A DNA stretch of 58,424 nt from Octopus bimaculoides (GCF_001194135.2 NC_068982.1:34874426-34932849), one strand, 5' to 3'. Numbered from the stretch's first letter, positions 18,388 to 32,398 are shown. Notes: generated by a model not told the origin, from the sequence alone. Translations and numbers: made by a program.

Positions 18388-18942
18388 GCTCTGATGCAGT
18401 ACCAGGTAGTGGCTCTCATGGCTTCTGATCTTTACTGATTGGAAGTGTTATCATGTACATTGTTTTGTCTTGGTATAAAAGATGGACTACAGCAAATATT
18501 CTGCTCAATACCACAGATTTGCTTGTCAATTGCTTGACCATAAGTATTTGAGCATGTCCCTTAGTGGCTGACAATATGTGGATTGCTGATCATGCGCAGA
18601 AGTAGTGGGGAAGCACCATAGCCATGTGTCGAGAGGAATTCTTTGGGGTCTGAATAATTCAGCTCTGGAAACATGTGTGTTTCGTTCATCATCCTTAAAC
18701 AAACCTTATTCAGGGATCTTTTGAGCTGGATGGGCTACTAAACCCAAAGAAAATTCTAACTAGGCCCCACCTGCAAGGTCATGTACTGTTTACTTTGATA
18801 TAAGATCACCATGCCGCGCATATATGGTTGAGATGCATGTGCTTGATGTACCCTTATCAGACGGGTAGTCATAATGGGTATATTGGGCTTTGTATATCTG
18901 TACCATAGTGTCACTTAGATGGCATGTACTGCTCTCTTACAC
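18388..18942 (+). mobile_element. ~555 bp non-coding interspersed repeat ('C-element'), full length, between TAA arrays
   Basis: Homologous to 19156-19440, 29519-30067, 31140-31413 and 32106-32398; I found no long ORF, TIR or Pol III boxes. Confidence 0.85.
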
Positions 18943-19155
18943 AATAATAACAATAATAATAATAATGATTATGATAATAATAATAATAATAATAGTAGTA
19001 GTAGTAGTAGTAGTAGTAGTAGTAGTAGTAGTAGTAGCAGCAGCAGCAGCAGCAGCAGCAGCAGCAGCAGCAGCAGTAGTAGTAGTAGTAGTAGTAGTAG
19101 TAGTAGTAGTAGTAGTAGTAGTAATAATAATAATAATAATAATAACAATAATAAT
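18943..19155. repeat. Symmetric compound microsatellite (AAT)n(AGT)n(AGC)n(AGT)n(AAT)n
   Basis: Directly visible. Confidence 0.95.
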
Positions 19156-19440
19156 GCCCTGATGCAGTACCAATTAGTGGCTCTCATGGATTCTGATCTT
19201 AACTGACTAGAAGTGTTATCATGTACATTGTTTTGTCTTGGTATAAAGATGGGCTACAGCAAATATTCTGTTCAATACCACAGATTTGCTTAACAATTAC
19301 TTGACCTTAACTATTTGAGCATATCCCTTAGTGACTGACAATATGTGCATCTCTGATCACGAGCAGAAGTAGTCGGGGAGCATCGTAGCCATGTGTTGAG
19401 AGGAATTCTTTGGGGCTTGGATAATTCACCATTGGAAACG
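19156..19440 (+). mobile_element. C-element, 5' half
   Basis: Starts gccctgatgcagtacc directly after (AAT)n; joins the Dong RT fragment at ~19440. Confidence 0.85.
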
Positions 19441-19442
19441 GA

Positions 19443-20920
19443 TGCCTTCTGCATGGATGATCTGAAGTTTTTTTAGTAAGTGTGAAAATGAGACAGATTC
19501 GTTAATACAGACTGTAAGACACTTCAGCAAAATCACAGGTAAGGAATTTGGCATTAATAAGTGTGGAATATTAGTCATGAGAAGGGGACAGGTAGACAAC
19601 AGCGAAGGCATCTAGTTACCTGATGGCCAGACATTAAAATCATTGAAAGGAGGAGTGAGTTATAAGTATCTAAAAATATTAGAATCTGACAGAGTACTAA
19701 CTATAGAAATGAAAACGAAAATTGAGGAGTACATCAGAAGGTTGAGGAAGGTTGAGTCAAAGCTAAATGGTCCGAATCTAGTGAAGGCTGTAAATACTTG
19801 GGCAGTATAATTGCTTAGATACTCAGAAGCTTTTGTAGATTGGACAAAAACTGAATTAGCAAAGCTAGACAGAAGAACTGGGAAAGAATTCAATATGAAT
19901 ATAGGACTCCACCCCAGGGCAGGAGTAGTAAGACTATACTTGCCCAGAAAGGAAGGCGGAAGAGGGTTGATATCAGTAGAAGACTGCGTAGAGTTAGCTA
20001 GAGTAGATGTAGACTCCTATGTAGGTAATAGTGAAGAAAGTTTATTAAAACCTGCTAGAGTCACAGCAAGACATAGGGAAACCAAAAACCCAAACGAAGT
20101 TAAAAACCAGAAAAACAGAACAGAAATTATCTTACTGGCAGAAGAAGGCGCTGCATGGTAGAATCCCAAAGATATTTGCAGCGAATAGTAGTAAGTCATG
20201 GTTATGGTTGCAGAAAGGAAGGCTGAAAAGGGAGACAGAAAGTTTGTGAGTAGCAGCACAAGATCAAACATTAAGGACTGACTGGATAAAAGCAAAGACA
20301 GACGAAAACTAAGTAGATTCCCTATGCAAATCAAAAGAGGAAGGTGTTATTCATATAGTAAGTGAATGCAGTATACTGGCACAGAAATAATACAAGAAAA
20401 GACCTGACAACTTAGGGAGGATAATATACTGGAAGTGATGTAGGAAGCTAGGATTTGAACATACTAGTAACGAGTATGAACACGAACCTAGTAAATTATT
20501 AGAAAGTAAGACTGGCAGAGTAATAGAAGCTAGAAGGCCTGATTTAGTAGTAGTAGATAAAGAGGATAGAAAGTGCCAGATAATTGACTTCACAGTTCCA
20601 AATGAAAATATCAATATGAGAGGGATAGATAAAATAGCAAAGTATTAGGACCTATTCATTGAATTACAGAGACTATGGAAGGTGTGGTTAAAATGTATCC
20701 CAGTAGTTATAGGTGCATTAGGAACTATCCCTAAAGATCTGAACAGATGGATAGAGGAAATACGCATGAAGTCCAGTTTAGTACAGCTCCAGAAAACTGT
20801 GTTATTAGGGACAGCTAGGATACTTAGGAGGTTTCTTGGTATCTAAGATTACTTGTTGTAACCCGATGTAAGGATTTTTTTCTTTTCCAACAGTCTAATC
20901 TGTTGTTCGTATATGAAATT
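19443..20920 (+). mobile_element. R4/Dong-clade LINE 3' part (RT C-terminus, CCHC knuckle, restriction-like endonuclease, 3' UTR), decayed
   Basis: FCMDDLKFF (YMDD-like), LHPRAGVVRLYLPRKEGGRGL, HIVSEC, EARRPDLVVVDK...IIDF...KIAKY, IPVVIGALG, LQKTVLLGTARILRRFL*; several stops and deletions; followed by (TAA)n. Confidence 0.92.
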
Positions 20921-21006
20921 AATAATAATAATAATAATAATAATAATAATAATAATAATAATAATAATAATAACAATAATAATAATAATAATAACAATAA
21001 TAATAA
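20920..21006. repeat. (TAA)n array at the LINE 3' end
   Basis: Directly visible. Confidence 0.95.
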
Positions 21007-21687
21007 TACGTATTGTTGTGGTTGATGATGTTATTGTTGTTGTTTCTCACCATCACCATAATGATTATTTGAAAATCTGTTTCCTTTTTATTATTCAGTT
21101 ACTGTGTAAACATATTTACAATCAACTCTATATTTGCTTGAGAAAAAAACTTAAGAGAAACAGTATGTGTGAGTGTGATACATATGCTTGTGTGTGAGTG
21201 TGATTAACGAAACGGAGAAAGATTGTAAAAGTGAAAAAATAGAGAGAAAGAGAACATTTTAGGAATTAATGCTGACTTAATACATAATCCTTCTTCCAAG
21301 TAATTTGCTCAGAATGTAAAGGAAATTTTAAATTAAATTCTGTAATTATATCTAGATCACACACATTTTTAACAGCTGTAAGTGAAACAATCTCCACTTC
21401 CATTTTGCTGCTAATGTTACCATATCTTATTTTTAAGTTGAACTTGTCTGAAACAGGAACCCCGAAGCTGCACACATTTTGCATAACATAAAATTGATTT
21501 TATAAAGAGTAAACATGGAGATTGTAAAAATATTGAGTATCCCATCGCCATGTTTCCTTTTATTCATTAGTGTATCATACGAGCTTTCCAAGAGATGATT
21601 ATATTCTGAATGTATAGAGGCCAACTGGCATTTTGTCTGTTTGTTCCTTCCAAAACCACGAATGAATTTAAGTTTATTGTTTTCAAG

Positions 21688-30450: not shown

Positions 30451-31065
30451 AAATCTGGTATATTAGCTCTGATCTTTTCCCGCCATGTTGGTAGTTGAGT
30501 GCTGCTACTTTCAAGTGCATCAATTACCATTGGTATCACGTCTACTCCCCTCATTGACCACAACCTTCGTATTTCTCACTTCAAATCATCATAGTTGTTT
30601 ATTTTTTATTCTTTCACATTGTTCCTGTTGTCACCGGAGTATGCTATGTCGATTATCATGCATGTTCTTTCTTTTTTATTCACCACAACAATGTCAGGTG
30701 ATCGCATCCCACAGGATTTTGTAGTTCTCATTCTCAGTGACTCCTTCTAGTGTTTTCTCATACCACGTCTTTGCTCTTTGTAGTCCATGATTTCCCCAGA
30801 GCCCCAAATGGATAATTATTGCCACATTGCAATGGAGTTTTTTGTATTCGTGTTGTGCCAATTTCGGGCATTCGCTAATGATGTACCATACCGTTGCCCT
30901 CCTCTCATCATGCATTCCGCATTTGTCGCTGTCGGTAATATCGTCTATCCTGCAGTTAACGCCTGTTCTTGAACTGCGCATGTGTATGCTTCTGTCTTTA
31001 TCCTCAGGTCATTCCTCCTCATCCATAGCCATTGGTCCTCTGTATATGTCGTGTTGTTGTTATCA
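30450..31065 (-). mobile_element. R4/Dong-type LINE 3' fragment (lineage X)
   Basis: DQWLWMRRNDLRIKTEAYTCAVQEQAL, WYIISECPKLAQHEYKK, ENENYKILWDA, PDIVVVNKKERTCMIIDIA, EIRRLWSMRGVDVIPMVI. Confidence 0.9.
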
Positions 31066-31069
31066 TCAT

Positions 31070-31139
31070 CATCATAATCATAATAATAATAATAATAATA
31101 ATAATAATAATAATAATAATAATAATAATAATAATAATA
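31070..31139. repeat. (TAA)n array
   Basis: Directly visible. Confidence 0.95.
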
Positions 31140-31413
31140 GCCCGAATGCAGTACCAGGCAGTGGCTCTCATGGATTCTGATCTTAATTGATTGGAAGTGT
31201 TATCATGTACATTGTTTTGTCTTGGTATAAAAAGATGGGCTACAGCAAATATTCTGCTTAATACCACAGATTTCCTTGTCAGTTGTTTGATCTTAACCAG
31301 TTGAGCATGTCCCTTGGTGGCTGACGATATGTGCATATCTGATCATGAGCAGAAGTAGTGGGAGAGCATCATAGCCATGTGTTGAGAGGAATTCTTTGGG
31401 GTTTGAATAATTC
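31140..31413 (+). mobile_element. C-element 5' half, runs into a gap
   Basis: Starts gcccgaatgcagtaccaggcagtggctctcatgg directly after (AAT)n. Confidence 0.88.
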
Positions 31414-32105
31414 NNNNNNNNNNNNNNNNNNNNNNNNNNNNNNNNNNNNNNNNNNNNNNNNNNNNNNNNNNNNNNNNNNNNNNNNNNNNNNNNNNNNNNN
31501 NNNNNNNNNNNNNNNNNNNNNNNNNNNNNNNNNNNNNNNNNNNNNNNNNNNNNNNNNNNNNNNNNNNNNNNNNNNNNNNNNNNNNNNNNNNNNNNNNNNN
31601 NNNNNNNNNNNNNNNNNNNNNNNNNNNNNNNNNNNNNNNNNNNNNNNNNNNNNNNNNNNNNNNNNNNNNNNNNNNNNNNNNNNNNNNNNNNNNNNNNNNN
31701 NNNNNNNNNNNNNNNNNNNNNNNNNNNNNNNNNNNNNNNNNNNNNNNNNNNNNNNNNNNNNNNNNNNNNNNNNNNNNNNNNNNNNNNNNNNNNNNNNNNN
31801 NNNNNNNNNNNNNNNNNNNNNNNNNNNNNNNNNNNNNNNNNNNNNNNNNNNNNNNNNNNNNNNNNNNNNNNNNNNNNNNNNNNNNNNNNNNNNNNNNNNN
31901 NNNNNNNNNNNNNNNNNNNNNNNNNNNNNNNNNNNNNNNNNNNNNNNNNNNNNNNNNNNNNNNNNNNNNNNNNNNNNNNNNNNNNNNNNNNNNNNNNNNN
32001 NNNNNNNNNNNNNNNNNNNNNNNNNNNNNNNNNNNNNNNNNNNNNNNNGAGAGAGAGAGAGAGAGAGAGAGAGAGAGAGAGAGAGAGAGAGAGAGAGAGA
32101 GAGCA

Positions 32106-32398
32106 ACGTTGGGGTACAAATTTACGAATCCCAATACCCGCCTGATAAGGATACACCAGGCACAGGCATCATAACCATGTGTGCGTAACATGCTGATCTC
32201 ATATTAAGATGAACACCACCTTGCAGGTGGAGCCCAGTTGGAATTTTCTTATATATAGTTTGAATTTTCTTCAGATCGAGTGGCCCATCCCACTCAAAAG
32301 GTCCCTGATTAAGGTTTGCTTAAGGATGTTGAATGAAACACCAATGTTTCCAGTGGTGAACTATTCAAATCCCAAAGAATTTCTATCAACACATGGCT
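32106..32398 (-). mobile_element. C-element 3' half
   Basis: Colinear with 29540-29830. Confidence 0.85.

Follow-up and report, generated by a model that had tools for sequence, protein, structure and literature searches.

Non-autonomous partners of long interspersed nuclear elements (LINE) that carry a restriction-like endonuclease are, to our knowledge, described for few systems only. In Entamoeba, EhLINEs, which belong to the R4 clade and carry such an endonuclease, mobilise the EhSINEs; these short interspersed nuclear elements (SINE) are non-coding, have no tRNA-type head, and are presumed to be copied by the R4-clade LINE protein. In Drosophila, the R2 SIDEs, which are short internally deleted R2 elements, are non-autonomous passengers of a site-specific LINE with a restriction-like endonuclease and insert at its target site. 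For Dong, the LINE considered here, the target is (TAA)n, in insects as well as in molluscs and cnidarians (PMC7998251), and Dong-R4 is an abundant LINE family in octopus (PMC8967140; PMC9115989), whose genomes are made up of repeats for about one half (PMC8967140). We analyzed a stretch of 58,424 nt from Octopus bimaculoides (GCF_001194135.2 NC_068982.1:34874426-34932849), hereafter the window, which has a GC content of 36%, is rich in microsatellites and contains 13 gaps of N. It carries five copies of a ~555-bp repeat, hereafter the element, which on the strength of its sequence we interpret, with moderate confidence, as a non-coding, non-autonomous retroposon copied into TAA arrays by Dong/R4-type machinery. 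The reasons for this interpretation are discrete termini, arrays at both ends, a single polarity shared with the tails of Dong, the presence of 5'-truncated copies, and the alternation of the element with four Dong fragments in two independent clusters.

The element resembles each of the systems described so far in some respects. Like the EhSINEs it is short, non-coding and devoid of a tRNA-type head, and copying by an R4-clade protein is presumed for both; the EhSINEs share their 3' end with their partner LINE and are not specific for microsatellites, whereas the element has no untranslated region (UTR) in common with the Dong fragments of the window and is found in TAA arrays. R2 SIDEs retain the 5' ribozyme and the 3' UTR of R2, whereas no ribozyme and no match to a Dong UTR of the window were found in the element. 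With Dong of Bombyx mori and the Dong-R4 LINEs of molluscs it has in common its target, (TAA)n, the polarity of its TAA tail, the occurrence of 5' truncation and a clustering in the same arrays, but Dong encodes a reverse transcriptase (RT) and an endonuclease and has a stem-loop after its stop codon, whereas the element is non-coding and lacks that stem-loop. Finally, its size, its lack of coding capacity and its simple-repeat end recall classical SINEs with microsatellite tails, e.g. those dependent on RTE. Classical SINEs combine a head of the RNA polymerase III (Pol III) type with a tail derived from a LINE (PMC5786205). Those with microsatellite tails generate arrays at the 3' end only, whereas the element has them at both ends, with no detectable Pol III head or LINE-derived tail. 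The literature that we searched describes neither a partner of Dong nor a Dong-associated passenger residing in microsatellites. The kind is already known, since non-coding short passengers have been described for LINEs, among them R2 and members of the R4 clade, and the element would be new as a Dong-associated case. It may well be already present as an unclassified consensus in Repbase, Dfam or an octopus repeat library.

The distribution of the copies was established by blastn with a reference copy, an nhmmer profile and MAFFT alignment, which together give exactly five copies and no further fragment in the window. The initial annotation had reported this number, with common boundaries wherever the ends are intact, and both points were borne out. 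The reference copy c1 (18388-18942, plus strand) is full length (555 nt). Copy c2 (19157-19439, plus strand) covers positions 1-283 of the element, with an intact 5' end and without the 3' half. Copy c3 (31142-31413, plus strand) covers positions 1-272 and runs into a gap of N (31414-32048), so that its truncation is an assembly artefact and not a biological one. Copy c4 (29509-30067, minus strand) is nearly full length, lacks the first ~5 nt only, and is followed on its 3' side by AATAAT and then by unique sequence. The last copy, c5 (32104-32399, minus strand), is an internal fragment (positions ~230-528) with two uninformative ends, flanked by (GA)n and a gap on one side and by the remnant of a non-Dong open reading frame (ORF) on the other. 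The gaps at 25356-25365, 26181-26190 and 28260-28834 affect none of the copies, and the 14-kb span that holds all five consists mainly of unrelated sequence. Pairwise identity reaches 89-90% among c1, c2 and c3, the divergence of which is star-like, and 80-86% between c4 and these three; c5 is 80% identical to c1 and to c4, its overlap with c2 and c3 being merely 42-54 nt. All copies are 80-90% identical, and they are old and of at least two ages.

The element starts with GCYCTGATGCAGTACC, which lies immediately 3' of (AAT)n in c1, c2 and c3, and it ends with ...CTGCTCTCT(TACAC/CATTC); the sequence directly after this end is a long AAT array in c1 and AATAAT in c4. An (AAT)n array therefore adjoins each of the three intact 5' ends, and AAT repeats come after each of the two intact 3' ends; the boundary sequences and (AAT)n flanks first reported for c1 to c4 were found to be correct on recheck. 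The array before c1 (18307-18387, plus strand; Tandem Repeats Finder (TRF) and triplet layout) reads (AAT)21 AAC (AAT)3. A compound array separates c1 from c2 (18943-19156, plus strand) and reads (AAT)2 AAC (AAT)5 GAT TAT GAT (AAT)6 (AGT)14 (AGC)13 (AGT)16 (AAT)7 AAC (AAT)3, so that the 5' flank of c2 is (AAT)7 AAC (AAT)3, with AAC(AAT)3 also present directly before c1. An (ATA)n array precedes c3 (31074-31140, plus strand; TRF and sequence layout). Perfect TAA or TTA runs account for merely 321 of the 53,208 non-N bases (0.6% of the window), and the location of three intact 5' ends out of three on such arrays is thus not a matter of chance. We also observed that the array between c1 and c2 is symmetric, passing from AAT to AGT, AGC, AGT and AAT again, and looks like a microsatellite which mutated and expanded outward from its middle.

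Taken copy by copy, insertion in (TAA)n is visible on both sides of c1, at the 5' junction of c2, c3 and a further copy seen through a protein entry (P0004, see below), and at the 3' end alone, as AATAAT, in c4. TAA is on the sense strand of the element (the plus strand of the initial annotation) in all five informative copies, P0004 included, which is a small sample. This polarity is that of the tail of DongA, a Dong fragment of the window described below, and of two Dong-type LINEs from other organisms (L001 and L003). In addition AATAATAACAATAATAAT is present on both sides of c1, and may represent a target-site duplication or alternatively an inherited tail.

To these five copies can be added others seen through protein databases. 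A protein search with an antisense ORF from the element returned seven "uncharacterized proteins" of Octopus bimaculoides in UniRef and nothing else. These spurious proteins are antisense translations of other copies and thus report their 5' junctions. Three of them (P0001, P0002 and P0005) extend to exactly the 5' nucleotide at which c1, c2 and c3 begin. In P0004 the similarity breaks at position ~88 and gives way to poly-Ile, i.e. (AAT)n, and this entry corresponds to a 5'-truncated copy directly adjoining a TAA array; in P0007 the truncation is at position ~105, against a unique flank. The 5'-truncated copies are c5, P0004 and P0007, their 3' ends being missing or unread. P0001 and P0005 share a flank, LANLWY, which we considered as a 5' extension of the element or as the UTR of a partner and rejected as both: it back-translates to TCAATACCACAGATTTGCT followed by AAT, which is the element's own internal sequence at positions ~116-137. 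In this subfamily a partial 5' segment, ending near position 137 and followed by one AAT, precedes a full-length 5' end, and such a tandem duplication of the 5' segment is reminiscent of the promoter monomers of LINEs.

Altogether six copies (c1, c2, c3, P0001, P0002 and P0005) share one 5' terminus, and the contexts found upstream of the 5' end are at least four: a TAA array, a partial element with one AAT after it, unique sequence rich in A and T, and the 3' UTR of a Dong fragment. One terminus in four contexts is strong evidence for a discrete unit as opposed to a randomly truncated UTR. Copies extending into one LINE ORF with scattered 5' ends, as would be seen for the 3' UTR of a LINE, were not found, only c4 adjoining a Dong UTR. 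A conserved 26-nt pattern of the element gave no matches when metagenomes were scanned, nor did six k-mers of the element in part of the O. vulgaris transcriptome supplement.

No coding capacity was detected, the longest ORF inside any copy being 58 aa. The element contains no inverted repeats, and its sole direct repeat (16 nt, imperfect) lies within c1. ARAGORN predicted no tRNA in the element, and no conserved pair of A and B boxes was found there, although the adjacent octopus tRNA-type SINE does show a B box. Rfam models, which cover hepatitis delta virus (HDV)-like and hammerhead ribozymes, 5S, 7SL and small nuclear RNAs, gave no credible match, either for the region (E<=1) or for c1 searched by itself (E<=10). 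The absence of terminal inverted repeats, tRNA-like boxes and a long ORF, noted at the outset, is therefore upheld by these searches. Two checks proposed in the initial annotation proved negative: the Rfam search returned no HDV-like ribozyme, even on c1 alone at E<=10, and RNAalifold, applied to four 5' ends and to three 3' regions, predicted weak structures in which covariation was almost absent, so that nothing convincing emerged from these few copies in favour of a conserved RNA structure. A hammerhead-like CUGAUG at the 5' end was discarded, since c3 does not conserve it and Rfam lends it no support. The possibilities of a long terminal repeat (LTR), considered from the start, and of a DNA transposon were also rejected, given that there are no inverted repeats, no long direct repeats, and no terminal repeats of either type. 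Compared with classical SINEs, the element is short (555 nt) and non-coding as they are, and has no Pol III head; its Pol III independence is argued only from the absence of a recognisable head.

The surroundings of the copies were then compared with Dong-type proteins. A Dong N-terminal fragment (17450-18306, plus strand; stop-free segments and homologues) contains a Myb/SANT-like region, RIKWTREDYRDVL..., and ends exactly at the TAA array preceding c1. A Myb/SANT-like N-terminal domain has been described for R4/Dong (PMC7998251). The fragment has 68 homologues, every match being at the N-terminal end of mostly short proteins. One of them, P0142, extends into a motif which we take to be the stretch ahead of the RT domain in LINE ORFs. 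The second fragment, DongA (19440-20919, plus strand; translation and tblastn), is a 5'-truncated pseudogene running from the RT motif YMDD to the CCHC motif and a restriction-like endonuclease of the PD-(D/E)xK type. Its ORF remnant extends to 20846 and is followed by a 3' UTR of 73 nt (20847-20919) and by a (TAA)n tail (20920-21008, plus strand; TRF and triplet layout). DongA has 608 homologues with RVT_1 and zf-RVT domains, its nearest solved structures are R2 proteins, and its relatives, from other organisms, reach only ~50% identity. Among three homologous loci from other organisms two, L001 and L003, visibly end in a short 3' UTR and (TAA)n; together with the published (TAA)n target these tails indicate that DongA is a genuine Dong-type element.

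Two fragments are on the minus strand. DongB (30432-31055; translation and tblastn) is a pseudogene fragment with the CCHC and endonuclease region, truncated at both ends, for which a protein homologue search returned no relatives. DongC (30068-30431) comprises the 3'-terminal ~85 codons of another Dong-type ORF, the third, with its stop codon at 30176-30174, and a 3' UTR of ~106 nt; the segment 30431-30174 matches the last ~85-110 residues of Dong-type proteins to the C-terminus (tblastn, E down to 1e-5). DongC and the N-terminal fragment are two Dong pieces which the initial annotation had missed. As a separate observation, the truncated 5' end of DongB abuts (GTT)3(ATC)4(ATA)n, which lies before the plus-strand copy c3 (31041-31140) and has the wrong repeat polarity for DongB.

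Element and Dong fragments are interleaved in two clusters. In the plus-strand cluster the order is Dong 5' fragment, TAA array, c1, compound array, c2 (positions 1-283), DongA from YMDD, and TAA array, c2 being joined directly to the RT coding sequence of DongA at YMDD; in the minus-strand cluster it is DongB, DongC, c4 and AATAAT. The adjacency to Dong, which the initial annotation gave for four copies, was found in these two clusters and not for c5, which adjoins the non-Dong ORF remnant and the GA repeat. We considered c2/DongA as a template-switch chimera and dropped this idea, since one later deletion inside a Dong copy fits equally well. The deletion is suggested by the finding of the N-terminal fragment upstream of c1: this fragment and DongA may be one Dong copy, split by the insertions of c1 and c2 and by a deletion of ~1.3 kb.

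A partner of the element was searched for through shared UTRs. Directly after the stop codon, DongA and three foreign Dong-type LINEs (L001, L002 and L003) have a 6-bp stem with a UKGUU loop (20847-20866 in the window, 11543-11562 in L001, and the corresponding sites in L002 and L003), in which 87.5% of the cells pair and two pairs show a compensatory change, among four sequences only. This hairpin could be the one recognised by the reverse transcriptase of Dong-type LINEs. The element does not have it, and this is the first of several observations which weigh against a retroposon mobilised by Dong. No resemblance was found between either end of the element and the 3' UTRs of DongA, DongB and DongC (blastn; local alignment against shuffled sequences, z<1.5 each), so that a LINE-shared 3' tail as in classical SINEs was not found among these fragments, and the element is unlike the sequence upstream of the Dong N-terminal fragment (16900-17480). 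The 3' junction can be read in two copies only, and one of these, c4, has no more than two AAT units. The same 12 nt stand upstream of c1 and c2, which makes an old tandem duplication possible in place of two insertions. Finally, c4 abuts the 3' UTR of DongC with no TAA between them, and c2 is truncated at its 3' end; the c4/DongC and c2/DongA junctions do not come from simple target-primed insertion and require a later deletion or a template jump. Template jumping is known in vitro for the R2 reverse transcriptase. As both junctions could be due to a template jump or equally to a later deletion, neither of them was taken as evidence.

The absence of a common UTR may mean that recognition occurs via the UAA tail alone, or that the true partner lies outside the window. 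The initial annotation had itself cautioned that the ends of the element do not match the 3' UTR of DongA; this caveat applies likewise to DongB and DongC, and the partner is not demonstrated. Its proposal of a microsatellite-targeted, Pol III-independent retroposon using Dong machinery is retained as far as the discrete unit, the TAA arrays, the single polarity, the 5' truncations and the interleaving are concerned, and weakened with respect to a Dong partner, which was not found, and to Pol III independence, argued from a missing head.

Other origins of the element were weighed against the same observations. It could derive, by internal deletion, from an unsampled lineage of Dong whose 5' UTR and 3' UTR were joined, as in R2 SIDEs; the unit formed by c2 and DongA (19157-21008) would then be a less deleted relative. 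That unit is bounded by TAA arrays as though it were one piece, and the partial tandem duplication of the first ~137 nt in some copies recalls the monomers of LINE 5' UTRs. However, a single deletion between a complete c2 and the downstream DongA accounts for the junction equally well, the 3' end of the element is unlike the DongA 3' UTR, there is no similarity to the region 16900-17480 upstream of the N-terminal fragment, and Rfam detects no HDV-like or hammerhead ribozyme. The features of SIDEs, namely ends identical to the UTRs of the parent and a 5' ribozyme, are thus not found with respect to the Dong lineages of the window, and we regard this origin as doubtful.

The c4/DongC junction can also be read in another manner. 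The minus-strand succession of the DongC ORF end, 106-nt UTR, c4 and AATAAT, with no TAA in between, looks like a single retrotransposed unit, in which the 555 nt would be the terminal part of a long 3' UTR of an autonomous DongC-type LINE and the short copies truncated or sub-genomic products. A UTR normally attached to its ORF was named in the initial annotation as an outcome that would contradict its proposal, and this junction, which speaks against a discrete retroposon, keeps it alive. It is opposed by the 5' nucleotide common to c1, c2, c3, P0001, P0002 and P0005 in varied contexts, which random truncation does not produce; moreover the DongC junction lacks the initial ~5 nt (GCYCT) of the element, and the sequence upstream of P0001 and P0005 is the element itself and not the DongC UTR. 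We consider a DongC-type UTR as unlikely.

A retroposon mobilised by another LINE family with TAA-type tails, Dong being close by only on account of common arrays, appears quite improbable. In its favour, RTE and CR1 are plentiful in octopus, none of the Dong fragments of the window has a UTR in common with the element, and microsatellite tails are frequent among RTE-dependent SINEs (PMC5786205). Against this, the 5' ends of the element are also inside arrays, which points to the targeting of arrays as known for Dong and not to the generation of a tail, and no other type of LINE was seen adjoining any copy. Lastly, local spread of an immobile piece of DNA by tandem or segmental duplication and recombination between TAA arrays, which would suit the 768 bp between c1 and c2, their identical upstream AAC(AAT)3 and the presence of five copies inside 14 kb, is very hard to reconcile with the presence of seven or more other copies, with differing flanks, in separate octopus gene models, and with sharp termini, 5'-truncated copies, both orientations and the star-like divergence of c1, c2 and c3.

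With mobilisation by Dong-type machinery as the preferred reading, we infer an RNA intermediate, the sense strand and the use of a Dong protein, and the following mechanism can be proposed. The plus strand would be transcribed from a promoter which is not of a recognisable Pol III type, giving an RNA terminated by UAA repeats. A Dong-type protein would nick a TAA array, and the nicked TTA strand would pair with the UAA tail and prime complementary DNA synthesis (target-primed reverse transcription). Synthesis would mostly reach the fixed 5' end of the RNA (GCYCUGAUGCAG), early stops leading to 5'-truncated copies. Each insertion would bring a new TAA tail, and the arrays would in this way become landing pads for further copies and for Dong fragments.

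L1 is known to require only poly(A) on its template. By extension, we put forward tentatively, as a conceivable though not a probable refinement, that Dong-type proteins need only a (UAA)n 3' tail on theirs, the element being a parasite that has a tail but neither a head nor any LINE-derived sequence, and its duplicated first ~137 nt a promoter of the monomer type. If this were true, any RNA ending in UAA could be copied into TAA microsatellites, TAA arrays would be self-growing landing pads, and a microsatellite-addressed class of non-autonomous retroposons would be defined. More generally, if the element is indeed mobilised by Dong, a microsatellite-specific LINE can be parasitised, and a natural test is available of what the Dong protein recognises on its template, i.e. 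the structure of the UTR or the UAA tail alone. The element would in that case also help to account for the compound TAA arrays and for false gene models in the annotation of cephalopod genomes. Its practical value is chiefly in repeat annotation, and no long-standing question is opened.

Other repeats and ORF remnants were observed in the window. Copies of the common tRNA-type SINE of octopus are present at ~7290-7642 and 29375-29483, with the B box GGTTCAGTCCC and the tail ...AAAAGAGTAAAAGAGTA; the copy at 29375-29483 is 5'-truncated and lies 25 nt from the 3' end of c4. Two related ORF remnants at 32560-32960 (plus strand) and 42521-42895 (minus strand), the former of which borders c5, look mariner-like by eye and have no Pfam match. 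A weak Dong-like match was detected at 46762-46959 (minus strand; two tblastn hits of ~54 aa at 39% identity), next to a 24-nt tandem repeat (46945-47007). Further downstream, an ORF on the plus strand (48624-49490) runs into a gap and shows only a weak match to HTH_29 in Pfam. Finally, a dispersed repeat family of ~110 nt, with 68-83% identity, is found at 13990-14100, 15597-15707 and 22789-22899.

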